Assembly (NCBI RefSeq): GCF_020745735.1
Contig: NC_083438.1
Span: 32,424,443 to 32,488,442 of the forward strand
Length of the DNA stretch: 64,000 nt
Direction: 5' to 3'
From: Hemiscyllium ocellatum
Taxonomy: Eukaryota
Program-made: the position numbers and the translations under genes
Shown here: piece after piece, positions 19,122 through 40,031 of the stretch
Layout: each line of letters begins with the position of its first letter
Numbering within the stretch: position 1 is the first letter of the stretch
The notes under the pieces: model-generated
Database searches by the model: none
What the model was told of the DNA's origin: nothing
The model's input: only the letters and a program-made list of their open reading frames with translations

Positions 19122-19454
19122 CTGTTACAGAGAGATGAACACGTTGATGAAAGTGTAGACCCGTCCTGTCAGAAATCTGACACTGATACTCGTCCTGGTC
19201 TGTCTCCATGAGGTCAGAGATCAGAACTGACCAGTTGCCTTGCTCCTGATGAGCTTTGAACAGGTTTGTTCTGTTTCTGACACGTGGGTCTTGTTCTCTT
19301 AAATCATCGCTCCCATTCACAAAAGTGTGTACCATTTCACTCTTGGGTGTCCCCCAGATTACCAGTAAATCAGAGACTGGGACATTCCCTTTGTAGGTAC
19401 AGGGCAACACAACCTGCTCCCCAAGGAACCCAGAAACTGGGACAGGCGAGTCAC
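19122..19454 (-). pseudogene. Gene B second IgV exon (V2): open frame, non-canonical donor (ACAG|ataag)
   Basis: Intact acceptor, both Cys and Trp present, 333 nt phase 1-1; donor position has AT where paralogs have GT (compare GAG|gtgagatatttctgtttcagg at 40032). Confidence 0.75.
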
Positions 19455-19569
19455 CTGGAAAAGATTGAAAGTATTTACCCACAGATAGACCCTCCCTGCT
19501 GGTACATTACATCCCAAGCTTCACATGGTTACACTGCGATGCTGGATTTACAAGAAGCATTGAAGTCCT

Positions 19570-22290
19570 GAATTGGAAGATGGTATTGGGCAAGATCTTT
19601 CACAAGTTCACTGGGGGTGGATATTCTCAGATATAGGGTTGGCTGGAAAATGGGAAGCTTTCAAAGAATGAGACAGCGAGGGTCAAGAAACACTATGTCC
19701 CTGTCAGGATGAAGGGCAAGGCTGGTAGGTGTAGGGAAAGCTGAATGACTTGGAGAAATTGAGGGTTGGGTCAAAAAAAGAAAGAAACATATGGCAGGGG
19801 ATAGACAGCAGAAATTGAGTTAATCCTGGGAAGTGTATAAAGGCAGTCGGAGCATACTTCAGAGGGAAGTCAGGTGGGCAAAAAGGGGACATGAGATAGC
19901 TTTGGCCAATAGGGCTAAGGAGAACCTAAAGCGATTCTCTAAATTCATTGAGGACAAAAGGGTAACGAGGGAGAGAATAGGACACCCCAAAGATTAGTAA
20001 GGCAGCTTTTGTGTGGAACTGCAGGAGATGGGGGAGATACTAAATAACTATTTGGCATCAATGTTTACTGTGGAGAAGGATCTGGAAGATTGAGAACTGG
20101 GTGAAATAGATGGTGACATCTTGAAAAGTGTCCATATTACAGAGAAGGTGGTGCTGGATGCCTTAAAACACAGAAAGGTGGATAAATCCCCAGGACCTGA
20201 TCAGGTGTACCCTAGAACTCTGTGGGAAGCTAGGGAAGTGATTGCTGGGCCCCTTGCTGAGATATTTGTTCCATCGATGTCACAGGTGAGATGCCAGAAG
20301 ACTAACGTGATGTCACCACTTAAGAAAGGTGGAAAGGAAAAGCCGGGCAACTATAGACCAGTGAGTCTGACATTAATGGTGGGCAAGTTGTTGGAGGGAA
20401 TCCTGAGGGACAGCATTACATGTATTTGGAAAGGCAAGGACTGATTCAGGGAAGTCAGGCTGGCTTTGTGTTTCAGAAATCATGTCTCGTGAACTTGATT
20501 GAGTTTTTGAAGAAGTAACAAAGAGGGTTGATGAGGGCAGAGCGGTGGACGTGATCTATGTGGACATCAGTAAGGAGTTTGACAAGGTTCCTCATGGGAG
20601 ACTGGTTAGCGAGGTTAGACCGCATGGAATACAGGGAGAACTAGCCATTTGGATACAGAACTGGCTCGAGGGTAGAAGGCAGAGGCTGGTGGTGGAGGGT
20701 TGCTTTTCAGACTGGAGGCCTGTGATCAATGGTATGCCACAAGGATCAGTGCTGGGACAACTCTTTTTCATCACTTATTTAACTGTTTAAATGTGAGCAG
20801 AGGAGGTACAGTTAGTAGGTTTGCAGCTGACACCAAAATTGGATCATAGAATCCCTAATGTGGAAACAGGCCATTGGCCCAACAAGTCCTCACCGACCCT
20901 CCAAACAGTATCCCACCCAGACCCATTCCCCAACCCTATATTTCCCCTAAGTCACATGCCTCACAACCCTGAACACTATGGGCAATTTAGCACAGCCAAT
21001 TCACCCGAACCTACACATCTTCAGACTGTGGGAGGAGACTGGAGCACCCAGAGCAAACCCACACAGACGCAGCGAGAATGTGCAAACTCCACACAGACAA
21101 TTGCCTGAGGTTGGAATTGAACCCAGATCCCTGGTACTGCAAGGCAAAATTGCTAACCACTGAGCCACCATGCCGCGTAGTGGACAGTGAAGGTTATCAC
21201 AGAGTACAACGGGATCTTGATCAGATGGGTCAATGGGCTGAGTAGCAGCAGATGGAGTTTAATTTAGATAAATGTGAGGTGCTACATTTTGGTAAGGTAA
21301 ATCAGAGCAAGGCTCATACACTGAACGGTCATGTCTTGGGCAGGTGATGCTGAACAAAGAGACCTTGGAATGCAGGTTCAGAGTTCCTTGAAAGTAGAGT
21401 CACAGGTAGATACGATAGTGAAGTAGGCCTTTGGTATGCTTTCCTTTACTGGTCAGTATTGAGTACAGGAGTTGGGAGGCCATGTTGCGGCTGTACAGGG
21501 CATTGTTAAGGCCACTTTTGGAACATTGTGTGCAATTTTGGTCTCCCTTCTATCAGAAGGATGTAGTGAAACTTGAAAGGGTTCAGAAAAGATTTACAAG
21601 GATGTCGCCAGGATTGGAGGATTTGAGCTGTAGGAGAGACTGAATTGGCTGTTTTCCCTGGAGTGGAGTCTGAGGGGGTGACCTGAAAGAGATTTATACA
21701 ATCATGAGGAGCATGGAGAGGGTAAATAAACAAAGTATTTTCGCTGGGATGGGAGAGTTCAGAACTAGACAGCATAGGTTTTGGGTGAGAGAGATAAGAT
21801 TGAAAACTGACATAAGGGGCAACTTTTTCACACAGAGGGTAGTGCATGTATAAAATGAGCTGTTAGAGGACGTGGCGGAGGTTGGTACAATGACAGCATT
21901 TGAAAGGCATTTGGAGGGTTTGAGCTCGAGGGAAAGGCGGAATAGGCTGGGGCTGTTTTCCCTGTAGTGTCAGAGGTTTGAGGGATGACCTTTTAGAGGT
22001 TTATCAAATCATGAGGGGCATGGATAGAGTGAACAGCCAAGGTCTTTTCCCCAGGGTAGGGGAGTCCAAAATTAGAGGGCATAGGTTTAGGGTGAGAGGG
22101 GTAGGATTTTAAAAAGGACCTTTTTCACAGAGAGGGTGATGCATGGACTGAATGAGAATAGAAAGGTATATGAATAGAAAGAATATATAGAGGGGTATGG
22201 GTCAAATGCTAGTAAATGGGACTTGGTTAATTTAGGGTATCTGGATAGCATGGATGATGTGGAGTGAAGGGTCTCTTTCCATGCTGTCCC
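19570..22290 (+). mobile_element. Degenerate CR1 ORF2 fragments with a nested HE1-like SINE (about 20845-21178, minus)
   Basis: KSPGPDQVYP, NYRPVSLT, DISKEFDKVPHGRL, PQGSVLG, KLERVQKRFTRM in successive ORFs. Confidence 0.9.
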
Positions 22291-22436
22291 GTTCTATAAT
22301 TCTGTGACTCTCACTGAGTCAGTCTTTGGTAAAATATCACACAGCATTTCAAACTTTCCAAGGTTCCTCCCTGTCGATCCAGCATGATCCAGTGTAAGAG
22401 CTGAGAACACACGCAGTAGTTTAGAAACAGATTTAC

Positions 22437-22475
22437 CTGATACATGTGTATTCGGTCCAGGTGTAGGAGCTCGCT
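22437..22475 (-). CDS. Gene B 39-nt stalk mini-exon (ERAPTPGPNTHVS)
   Basis: tttccttcag|AG acceptor and CAG|gtaaat donor; phase 1-1. Confidence 0.8.
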
Positions 22476-22599
22476 CTGAAGGAAACATCGTGTGGTTAGT
22501 ACGGTGTGTGAAACAAACTACAGAAATGTTCAGAGGCTCTATCGGGCTTTAGGGAAATACACCCAGGGAGGAATGAGGCTCAGGTCAGACGGATCAGGA

Positions 22600-38262: not shown

Positions 38263-38492
38263 TAACTCAGTACTGTCCAGCTGCTCAGTGCTGACAAATA
38301 TCCAGCACAAGCTGCTTTTAGTTGAAGACCCTCAATGTCTGAGCTTTAACCTTCCCCCAGAAATGAAAGCAGTGAGTTACTGATCAGAGCTTCTTGTAAA
38401 TCCAGCATCGCAGTGTAACCATGTGAAGCTTGGGATGTAATGTACCAGCAGGGAGGTCCTATCTGTGGATAAATACTTTCCATCTTTTCCAG

Positions 38493-38837
38493 GTGACTCG
38501 CCTGTCCGAGTTTCTGGGTTCCTTGGGGAGCAGGTTGTGCTGCCCTGTACCTACAAAGGGAGTGTCCCAGTCTCTGATTTACAGATTATTTGGGGGACGT
38601 CCAGGAGTGAAATCGTACACAAGTTTGTCAATGGGAGTGATGATTTCAGACAACAAGACCCACAGTTCAAAAGCCGAACAAAACTGTTCAAAGATCAACT
38701 GGAACAAGGCAACTGGTCAGTTCTGATCTCTGACCTCAGGGAGACAGACCAGGCCGAATATCAGTGTCAGATTTACAGCAGGATGGGAGATCGCTTTCGA
38801 TGGCTGGAAGTTGTTTCAGTCCATCTCTCTGTCACAG
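38493..38837 (+). CDS. Gene C first IgV exon (V4)
   Basis: ttccag|GT GAC acceptor and ACAG|gtgagt donor; 345 nt, phase 1-1; intact triad; two NxS sequons. Confidence 0.92.
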
Positions 38838-38977
38838 GTGAGTGTTTTCGTTTGGTTATTTTGCTCTGAGTTTGATTTCCTGAGATAATGGTATAGTGGT
38901 CATGTTGGGAAACTGGACTTTGAATTTTTCTGTAGTTTGTTTCACACACCATACTAACCACACGATGTTTTCTTTAG

Positions 38978-39016
38978 AGCGAGCTCCTACACCTGGACCG
39001 AACACACCTGTACCAG
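38978..39016 (+). CDS. Gene C 39-nt stalk mini-exon (ERAPTPGPNTPVP)
   Basis: ttttctttag|AG acceptor and CAG|gtaaat donor; phase 1-1. Confidence 0.8.
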
Positions 39017-39693
39017 GTAAATCTGTTTCTAAACTACTGCATGTGCTTTCAGCTCTGACATTGGATCATGCTGGATAGACAGGGAGGAACCTTGGAAGGC
39101 TTGAAATCTTGTGTGATATTTTACCAAAGAATGACTCAGTGAGAGTTAGTGGTGTGGGTCACTGTTCCCTGGAAGTGGTCCTTAATCTTCCTGGGATTGT
39201 TATTTCTGTTTCTGAGATACCCCTTCCTGTCCCTCAGATACAGAATACCTGGGTTTCCTACTTCCTACTATCATTAGTGTTTCTGGAATTCTGTGTGGAG
39301 ACTCTCGGTACAATGTGAATGTAACCCTCCTCTTGGGAAACTGATGGGATTGGGAATGATGCTGGTTGAAGTCAGTGAAGCCATATCGACTGGTCTTCCA
39401 CCCAGTTCCTGGGAGAAAGGGAATTTTCTCATCTTGTTGAGATTTACTTGCTTCCATGTGGCTCTGTGCAGTTTCCAGTTTAAAGAAAGATTAGAGTCTG
39501 CACACTGTGGAGGGAATCTTTATTAGAAATAATGTGGTCTTGAGCCTTAATCTTCCCATAGAAATGAAAGCAGTGAGTTACTGATCAGAGCTTCTTGTAA
39601 ATCCAGCATCGCAGTGTAACCATGTGAAGCTTGAGATGTAATGTACCAGCAGGGAGGGTCTATCTGTGGGTAAAAAGTTTCAATCTTATCCAG

Positions 39694-40031
39694 GTGACTC
39701 GCCTGTCCCAGTTTCTGGGTTCCTTGGGGAGCAGGTTGTGCTGCCCTGTACCTACAAAGGGAATGTCCCAGTCTCTGATTTATGGGTAATCTGGAGCAGA
39801 GAGAAGGAGGAAATTTTATCCGTGTTTGTCGATGGGAATGATGATTTGACCCAACAAGACCCAGAAACCGAGCGAACCTGTTCAAAGATCAACTGGAACA
39901 AGGCAACTGGTCAGTTCGGATCTCTGACCTCAGGGAGACAGACCAGGACGAGTATCAGTATCAGATTTACAGCAAGATGGAGGAGCACTTTCATCGTGAT
40001 GGAGTTGTTCCAGTCCATCTCTCTGTGAGAG
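39694..40031 (+). pseudogene. Gene C second IgV exon (V5): frameshifted, F-strand Cys lost
   Basis: 7-nt deletion (cggttca) after GACCCA gives 338 nt; the restored frame reads DEYQYQIY (Cys to Tyr); splice sites are intact. Confidence 0.9.

Follow-up and report, generated by a model that had tools for sequence, protein, structure and literature searches.

Probable pseudoexons for a second V domain in clustered B7-like genes of the epaulette shark

A 64,000-nucleotide stretch of the genome of the epaulette shark, Hemiscyllium ocellatum (contig NC_083438.1, forward-strand positions 32,424,443 to 32,488,442; the window hereafter), contains three paralogous genes, here called A, B and C, for B7-like membrane proteins. 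In B and C, an exon for an immunoglobulin V-type (IgV) domain lies between the stalk exon and the transmembrane (TM) exon. We conclude, with a probability of about 0.75, that these two exons, V2 in B and V5 in C, are pseudoexons, that is, degenerating remnants of an IgV exon that was membrane-proximal in an ancestral gene of leader-V-stalk-V-TM layout, and that the genes are members of a family of B7-like, V-only type I membrane proteins that is specific to sharks and evolves fast. What can be read directly from the DNA comprises the lesions, the phases of the exons, the homology and ancestry of V2 and V5, a CR1-like insertion common to A and B and tracts of gene conversion. In the mechanism that we propose, the spliceosome would join the stalk to the TM exon to give an in-frame single-V protein, as A must do and B is annotated to do. 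V2 is not spliceable onward with its AT donor, inclusion of V5 would shift the frame, and in A the exon was removed with most of the CR1 insertion by a microhomology-flanked deletion. We regard this as ordinary exon decay in a birth-and-death family of B7-like immune-type genes, with no new mechanism involved.

Three B7-like V-only genes share one exon design

The window derives from H. ocellatum, and the NCBI protein XP_060708608 (P0001) matches gene A at 100%. Comparison of the window with itself showed that A, B and C are pairwise 91–94% identical. Genes A and B lie on the minus strand and gene C on the plus strand, with B and C head to head. All three are built from a leader, a B7-like IgV domain, a 13-residue stalk, a TM segment and a tail, and a second V exon between stalk and TM is present in B and C and missing in A. 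The exon order is V1-stalk-TM in A, V3-stalk-CR1-like long interspersed element (LINE)-V2-TM-tail in B and V4-stalk-V5-TM-tail in C. The V-stalk-V-TM layout that an earlier note on this DNA had described for B and C was thus found at the places it gave. A tblastn search with one V exon as query located five IgV exons of B7-like type in the window, and no more.

V1 is 339 nt long, V2 333 nt and V3 and V4 345 nt each, and all are of phase 1-1. The 39-nt stalk exons open with two codon bases and close with one, which makes them phase 1-1 as well; the TM exon is of phase 1-2, which has no bearing on the frame argument. Because every ectodomain exon is of phase 1-1, skipping a V or stalk exon leaves the frame intact, and exon lengths and codon phases bear out the same statement of the earlier note.

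V1 to V4 gave Pfam V-set matches at 1e-10 to 1e-12. The closest V domains in the PDB are those of CD276 (6e-18), VTCN1 (2e-16) and PD-L1 (~5e-13), with E values ranging over the V exons from 6e-18 to 1e-13. In none of the three genes was an IgC-type exon found between V and TM, and the annotated proteins run V, stalk, TM. The missing IgC exon places the genes as B7-like and V-only, and not as canonical members of the B7/butyrophilin group. NCBI names across the family are inconsistent and include CD276 homolog, ICOS ligand-like, sodium channel beta-4-like and MOG-like.

The second V exon of gene B has an open frame and a dead donor

Gene B consists of the following features, in the order of transcription.

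24135–24479, minus strand: first IgV exon of B (V3), 345 nt, intact
22437–22475, minus strand: stalk exon of B, 39 nt
19800–22306, plus strand: CR1-like LINE in the stalk-to-V2 intron of B, with reverse-transcriptase open reading frames (ORFs) on the plus strand; its 3′ end abuts the intron at 22306 and its 5′ limit is approximate
19122–19454, minus strand: V2, second V exon of B, 333 nt, open frame, intact AG acceptor, AT donor at 19121–19120
18091–18193, minus strand: TM exon of B
16599–16719, minus strand: cytoplasmic exon of B, with the stop codon

V2 reads through 110 full codons with no stop, retains both Cys residues and the Trp, and carries a 12-nt in-frame deletion near its 3′ end. 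The exon ends cag/ATaaga, with the slash marking the splice boundary, and the ends of V1, V3, V4 and V5 all read cag/GTgag. The description of V2 in the earlier note, a retained ORF followed by an AT donor, therefore holds base for base. A U12-type AT-AC intron was considered as a rescue of this donor and rejected: the donor reads ATAAGA and is not ATATCC-like, and the acceptor of the TM exon is AG and not AC. The sole in-frame cryptic GT lies 27 nt past the V2 donor (tct/gtattg); it is weak-looking and is used by no gene model. An ORF at 19042–19482 runs from V2 into the intron to a stop, such that read-through of the dead donor adds 27 codons and a stop. V2 is present in none of the four NCBI isoforms of B (P0221, P0189, P0222 and P0218), one of which skips the stalk and one V3.

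The second V exon of gene C is frameshifted and lacks a canonical cysteine

The features of gene C are given below, together with a short interspersed element (SINE)-like sequence that is found in all three genes.

38493–38837, plus strand: first IgV exon of C (V4), 345 nt, intact
38978–39016, plus strand: stalk exon of C, 39 nt
39694–40031, plus strand: V5, second V exon of C, 338 nt, AG acceptor and GT donor intact
40116–40509, plus strand (in C): SINE-like element between the second V and the TM exon, with copies at 1493–1886 in A and 18540–18938 in B; absent from the intact two-V gene of Chiloscyllium punctatum
40904–41012, plus strand: TM exon of C, intact and open
42723–42882, plus strand: cytoplasmic exon of C, with AG acceptor and a frame open to the stop

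V5 lacks 7 nt at about 39861–39863 that are present in all other copies, which leaves a length of 338 nt (2 mod 3). The codon of its second canonical Cys is changed from TGT, as found in the other copies, to TAT at 39959–39961. The 7-nt frameshift and the Cys-to-Tyr change previously noted for V5 are thus both real features of the assembled DNA. In addition, V5 has Arg for Leu in the conserved-strand motif WSVLISDL. When the exon is read in two pieces around the deletion, there is no further stop. The TM and tail exons of C are still open, and the leader, V, stalk, TM and tail exons flanking V2 and V5 are likewise open.

We regard it as very nearly negligible that the AT donor of V2 or the 7-nt deletion of V5 is an assembly error. 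Four other samples of the species gave DNA runs in which 0.65–0.74 of the sampled words of the V5-specific 281 nt were recovered. For the presumably assembled sample, which is also that of the putative RNA runs described below, most runs gave 0.74–0.87 and one gave 0.29. Moreover, the same kind of AT donor is found in C. punctatum, in the DNA of one assembly and in a protein model from a second.

Gene A has lost the exon by deletion

Gene A shows the following features around the position of the missing exon.

3152–3490, minus strand: IgV exon of A (V1), 339 nt, phase 1-1, GT donor; the only functional V of A and part of NCBI proteins P0220 and P0001
2056–2094, minus strand: stalk exon of A, 39 nt, phase 1-1; sequence ERAPTPGPKTPVP
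1874–1886, minus strand: deletion junction of A, 13 nt aligning with both the CR1-like 3′ tail in B (22257–22269) and the start of the pre-TM SINE-like element in C (40119–40132)
1059–1164, minus strand: TM exon of A, phase 1-2

Past the stalk exon, A retains ~180 nt of an intron common to the paralogues; directly after these, at 1874–1886, comes the SINE-like element that in B and C stands ahead of the TM exon. This agrees with the earlier note, which had the stalk of A followed by the same pre-TM intron with no V and had placed the junction near 1860. About 50 nt of the CR1 3′ tail are kept in A at the same insertion point as in B, and C has an empty site. The shared tail and the empty site make A and B sister genes, with C the first to branch off. 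From these alignments, A is a deletion derivative of a B-like gene, with 13 nt of microhomology at the junction and with the LINE body and the V exon removed; the extent of the deletion, measured on present-day B, is ~3.35 kb. Given that the CR1 insertion is common to A and B, the deletion may have taken an exon that was already dead. NCBI models A as V1, stalk, TM and tail (P0001/P0220).

Two-V relatives in other sharks point to an ancestral coding exon

Intact counterparts of the second V are found in related genes. In the same genome, P0175 is an intact leader-V-stalk-V-TM protein, with orthologues in two Chiloscyllium species; P0173 and P0024 are intact two-V proteins of Chiloscyllium. Intact two-V relatives are also present in Cetorhinus and Pristiophorus, and Carcharodon, Rhincodon, Scyliorhinus and Heterodontus have likely two-V proteins, judged by their length and by Pfam hits to two domains. 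The family is a large B7-like, V-only one, and many shark orders have members of it with one V or with two. One intact two-V gene of C. punctatum, L001, aligns collinearly with C from the V exon across a short intron, the stalk, the next intron and the second V to the TM exon. The 3′ flanks of V2 and V5 are shared between the two and with second-V exons of C. punctatum. The shared flanks, together with two-V genes elsewhere, show that V2 and V5 are relics of a coding exon and not new insertions, and on these comparisons the two-V layout is the ancestral one.

The orthologue of gene C in C. punctatum, locus L003, is collinear with C at 92.3% identity over 5.4 kb. Its second V has an intact frame, lacks the 7-nt deletion and keeps the Cys, but has an AT donor. 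A protein model from a second C. punctatum assembly has Asp where Gly is expected, which implies the same AT base. Since the lesions of V5 are absent from L003 and the AT of L003 is absent from V5, both arose after the split of the genera. The AT donor of V2 lies in a different paralogue from that of L003. An older C. punctatum annotation of the orthologue of C (P0194) joins the stalk to the TM exon. Two more second-V exons, in SINE-bearing C. punctatum genes (L001 5′ and L002 3′), are broken by other indels and stops.

Gene conversion tracts involve the dead exons

V5 is chimeric. Exon positions 86–215 (window 39779–39908) are 95% identical to V1 and 93% to V3, and only 77% to the orthologue of V5 itself, while the 3′ third of the exon and its flank are 94–95% identical to the C. 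punctatum orthologue. As the middle of V5 is of the A/B first-V type and its ends are of its own orthologue's type, the pseudoexon V5 was the recipient of first-V sequence. The 7-nt deletion falls inside the converted tract. A second tract is intragenic and links V2 with V3 (19409–19561 and 24434–24586): the two agree at 31 consecutive polymorphic sites, which span the first 46 nt of the exon and 107 nt of the 5′ flank before it; none of 5000 permutations gave so long a run, and beyond the tract V2 and V3 are only 76–78% identical. The flanking states leave the direction of this tract ambiguous.

The V2–V3 tract makes conversion among these exons real, and the earlier note had proposed that silent V cassettes serve as conversion donors. 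In the fuller form of that idea, the dead V exons would be a germline or somatic reservoir from which tracts are copied into the expressed first V exons, as in avian pseudo-V segments. We consider this highly improbable. In the clearest tract the pseudoexon received sequence, which speaks against a donor role; the V2–V3 tract lies in flank and in a near-invariant part of the exon, with almost no coding change; and neither tract shows a dead exon acting as donor.

A separate observation concerns the start of the V exons. The first 85 nt of all five (e.g. 38493–38577) are 96–100% identical, synonymous sites included, and the rest of the exon is 73–81% identical between V lineages. Either homogenisation by conversion or a constraint at the nucleotide level, for example for splicing, could account for this uniformity.

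Gene models and transcript data on the second V

That the mature mRNA of B and C skips the second V is something we infer from gene models together with a k-mer hint, which is a weak one. The hint comes from two putative RNA runs of H. ocellatum, in which the share of sampled words recovered was 0.19 and 0.09 for a 4.75-kb stretch of C and only 0.03 for the V5-specific 281 nt. Several observations weigh against the view that V2 and V5 are pseudoexons within working genes. The first group concerns splicing. The share of 0.19 may stem from repeats in the stretch of C rather than from its exons. The only NCBI model of C (P0028) includes V5 and ends at a premature stop inside it, and the NCBI model of the C. 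punctatum orthologue (P0026) reads through the dead second-V donor. According to these two models, the second V may be included in at least some transcripts. The second group concerns the genes as wholes. The first V exon V4 differs from its orthologue by 5.8%, the same as the introns, with a ratio of nonsynonymous to synonymous substitution rates (dN/dS) of 0.84. Every V exon pair, functional or not, has a dN/dS of 0.4–1.4, with V1 versus V3 at 1.38. In addition, the first V of L003 (L003:15405–15749) has Tyr for the first canonical Cys (Cys23; VVLPYIYKG). It may be that some of the genes are dying in their entirety, and L003, which also has the AT donor on its second V, may be decaying in this way.

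The models P0028 and P0026, both of which end in or just after the second V, also bear on another possibility, namely that V2 and V5 are used as terminal or 'poison' exons, either with nonsense-mediated decay tuning expression or with production of a short secreted V-stalk(-V) form. Both splice sites of V5 are kept, and the ORF at 19042–19482 extends V2 into the intron to a stop, as such use would have it. On the other side, the two putative RNA runs contain hardly any V5-specific words, and the products would be without a folded second domain, the frame of V5 being broken after strand C″ and its Cys lost. We therefore judge this use unlikely. We give still less credence to a bolder version, in which loss of the membrane-proximal V was recurrent and selected: the donor +1 G-to-A change would have arisen separately in H. 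ocellatum B and in the C. punctatum orthologue of C, and the dead exon would act as an alternative terminal or poison exon that switches between a membrane-bound single-V form and a truncated or secreted one. The proposal that silent V cassettes are kept as alternative exons is not supported by the exons themselves, in that V2 has no way of being spliced to the TM exon and a frame break comes with V5. Under the pseudoexon reading that we prefer, the NCBI model of gene C is a case of automatic annotation misled, as it ends inside the broken exon V5.

One loss or several

The earlier note had also suggested repeated convergence on a short single-V form. The part of this that stands is that the lesions differ in A, B and C: V2, V5 and the deletion in A share none. 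Independent loss itself is not established by this, since one early silencing would be followed by decay of the same kind, and one silencing with subsequent decay fits about as well.

The neutral rate was gauged from gene C and L003, the introns of which diverge by 5.8% with 2.5 frameshifting gaps per kb. Since the species split, ~0.4 frameshifting indels and 0.45 stop-creating changes are expected per lineage per exon under neutrality, and a neutral 345-nt exon is expected to keep an open frame ~40% of the time per lineage. The open frame of V2 was considered as evidence of function and set aside, as it is not significant at this rate. dN/dS was likewise set aside as a test of constraint on V2, because the functional first V exons fall within the same range of 0.4–1.4.

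A single early silencing, in the ancestor from which A, B, C and L003 all descend, with the lesions now seen being later neutral decay and not convergence, is a serious contender that we place a little short of an even chance. Its cause would leave no visible exon lesion, and a candidate is the SINE-like insertion ~85 nt downstream of the donor. The second V is disabled in all SINE-bearing genes found (V2, V5, L003, L001 5′ and L002 3′), and the only intact two-V gene examined is without the element, which is suggestive but stems from a single clade. The CR1 insertion common to A and B fits an early silencing, as do the open frames of V2 and L003, each expected ~40% of the time at the neutral rate, and a dN/dS that does not set dead exons apart from live ones. 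Arguing the other way, there is no lesion in common, and V5 has damage that is missing in its orthologue, as the orthologue has damage that is missing in V5. Furthermore, if the silencing lay at the base of the SINE-bearing clade (~17% pairwise divergence), two clean frames would be unlikely, at ~0.07 each, although clean frames could have been refreshed by conversion from live exons. Between two or three independent losses and one ancestral loss followed by decay the odds are roughly even, and we lean slightly to at least two independent losses.

Comparison with known systems

The closest precedent for the pseudoexons described here is pseudoexon 3 of the human and ape lineage III KIR2D genes, an exon for an Ig-like domain within a working gene that is left out of the mRNA and that shows two-domain forms to have arisen from three-domain ancestors (PMC3504360). 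The KIR exon remains functional in some paralogues and orthologues (PMC3504360), and in the sharks the homologous exon is coding in P0175, P0173, P0024 and L001. As in KIR, the shark pseudoexon lies within an otherwise intact gene, its skipping is frame-neutral, and a domain is lost at the level of the exon in a clustered, fast-evolving family. The two cases differ in that the KIR domain is of the KIR Ig type, the exon lost is N-terminal and its non-incorporation was shown by cDNA, whereas the shark domain is a B7-like V-set, the exon lost is membrane-proximal and its non-incorporation is deduced.

The B7 family (CD276/B7-H3, VTCN1/B7-H4 and PD-L1) and the butyrophilins resemble the shark proteins in being type I membrane proteins with a short tail, and their V domains are the best sequence matches. 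Unlike these proteins, the shark ectodomain is without IgC and consists of one or two V domains and a 13-residue Pro/Thr stalk. In contrast to the shark proteins, those of chicken BG genes have long tails. BG genes encode B7/BTN relatives that are V-only in their extracellular part and form a multigene family with dynamic expansion and contraction, according to the abstract of the study (PMC4046983). They are a V-only multigene family like the shark genes, but the same abstract (PMC4046983) describes no two-V members or internal pseudoexons. Avian Ig pseudo-V pools likewise set non-functional V sequences beside a functional V, with conversion between them. Unlike those arrays, the shark pseudoexons lie inside gene introns and are relics of a coding exon, and V5 was the recipient in the only tract of clear polarity.

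No published description of this shark B7-like, V-only family was found in the literature searched. The locus provides a base-resolution case of a change in domain number in a clustered immune-type gene family, in which symmetric phase 1-1 exons make it possible for a gene to survive the loss of a domain, whether by a splice-site hit, by frameshift or by deletion.

Further features of the family and the locus

On the same scaffold and outside the window, P0213, P0185 and P0212 have the leader, TM and tail common to the family, with another stalk or a Cys-rich non-V domain replacing the V, and V-skipped isoforms are annotated among family members on this scaffold. The family gives the impression of phase 1-1 cassettes that can be swapped for one another. 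No tyrosine motifs were seen in the tails of A and B. The tail of C reads DLYNM, a YxxM-type motif (42735–42746), and the equivalent in B is NLHKM.

The 5′ ends of B and C, comprising the first coding and leader exons (29526–30440 and 32265–33186), form an inverted repeat of 98% identity, with the rest of the genes at 91–94%, which suggests a recent homogenisation of their promoter/leader region. At 57409–58695 on the minus strand lies a fourth family member or fragment, with an intact TM exon (57979–58083) and part of the intron that follows the stalk in gene C; within the window it lacks a V exon, a stalk exon of the kind seen in A, B and C, and the SINE-like element. Between A and B, an orphan cytoplasmic-tail exon of the family (11480–11653, plus strand) has a frame open to the stop and sits within inverted duplications that pair 11596–11980 with 16272–16659 and 12209–13414 with 15084–16269.

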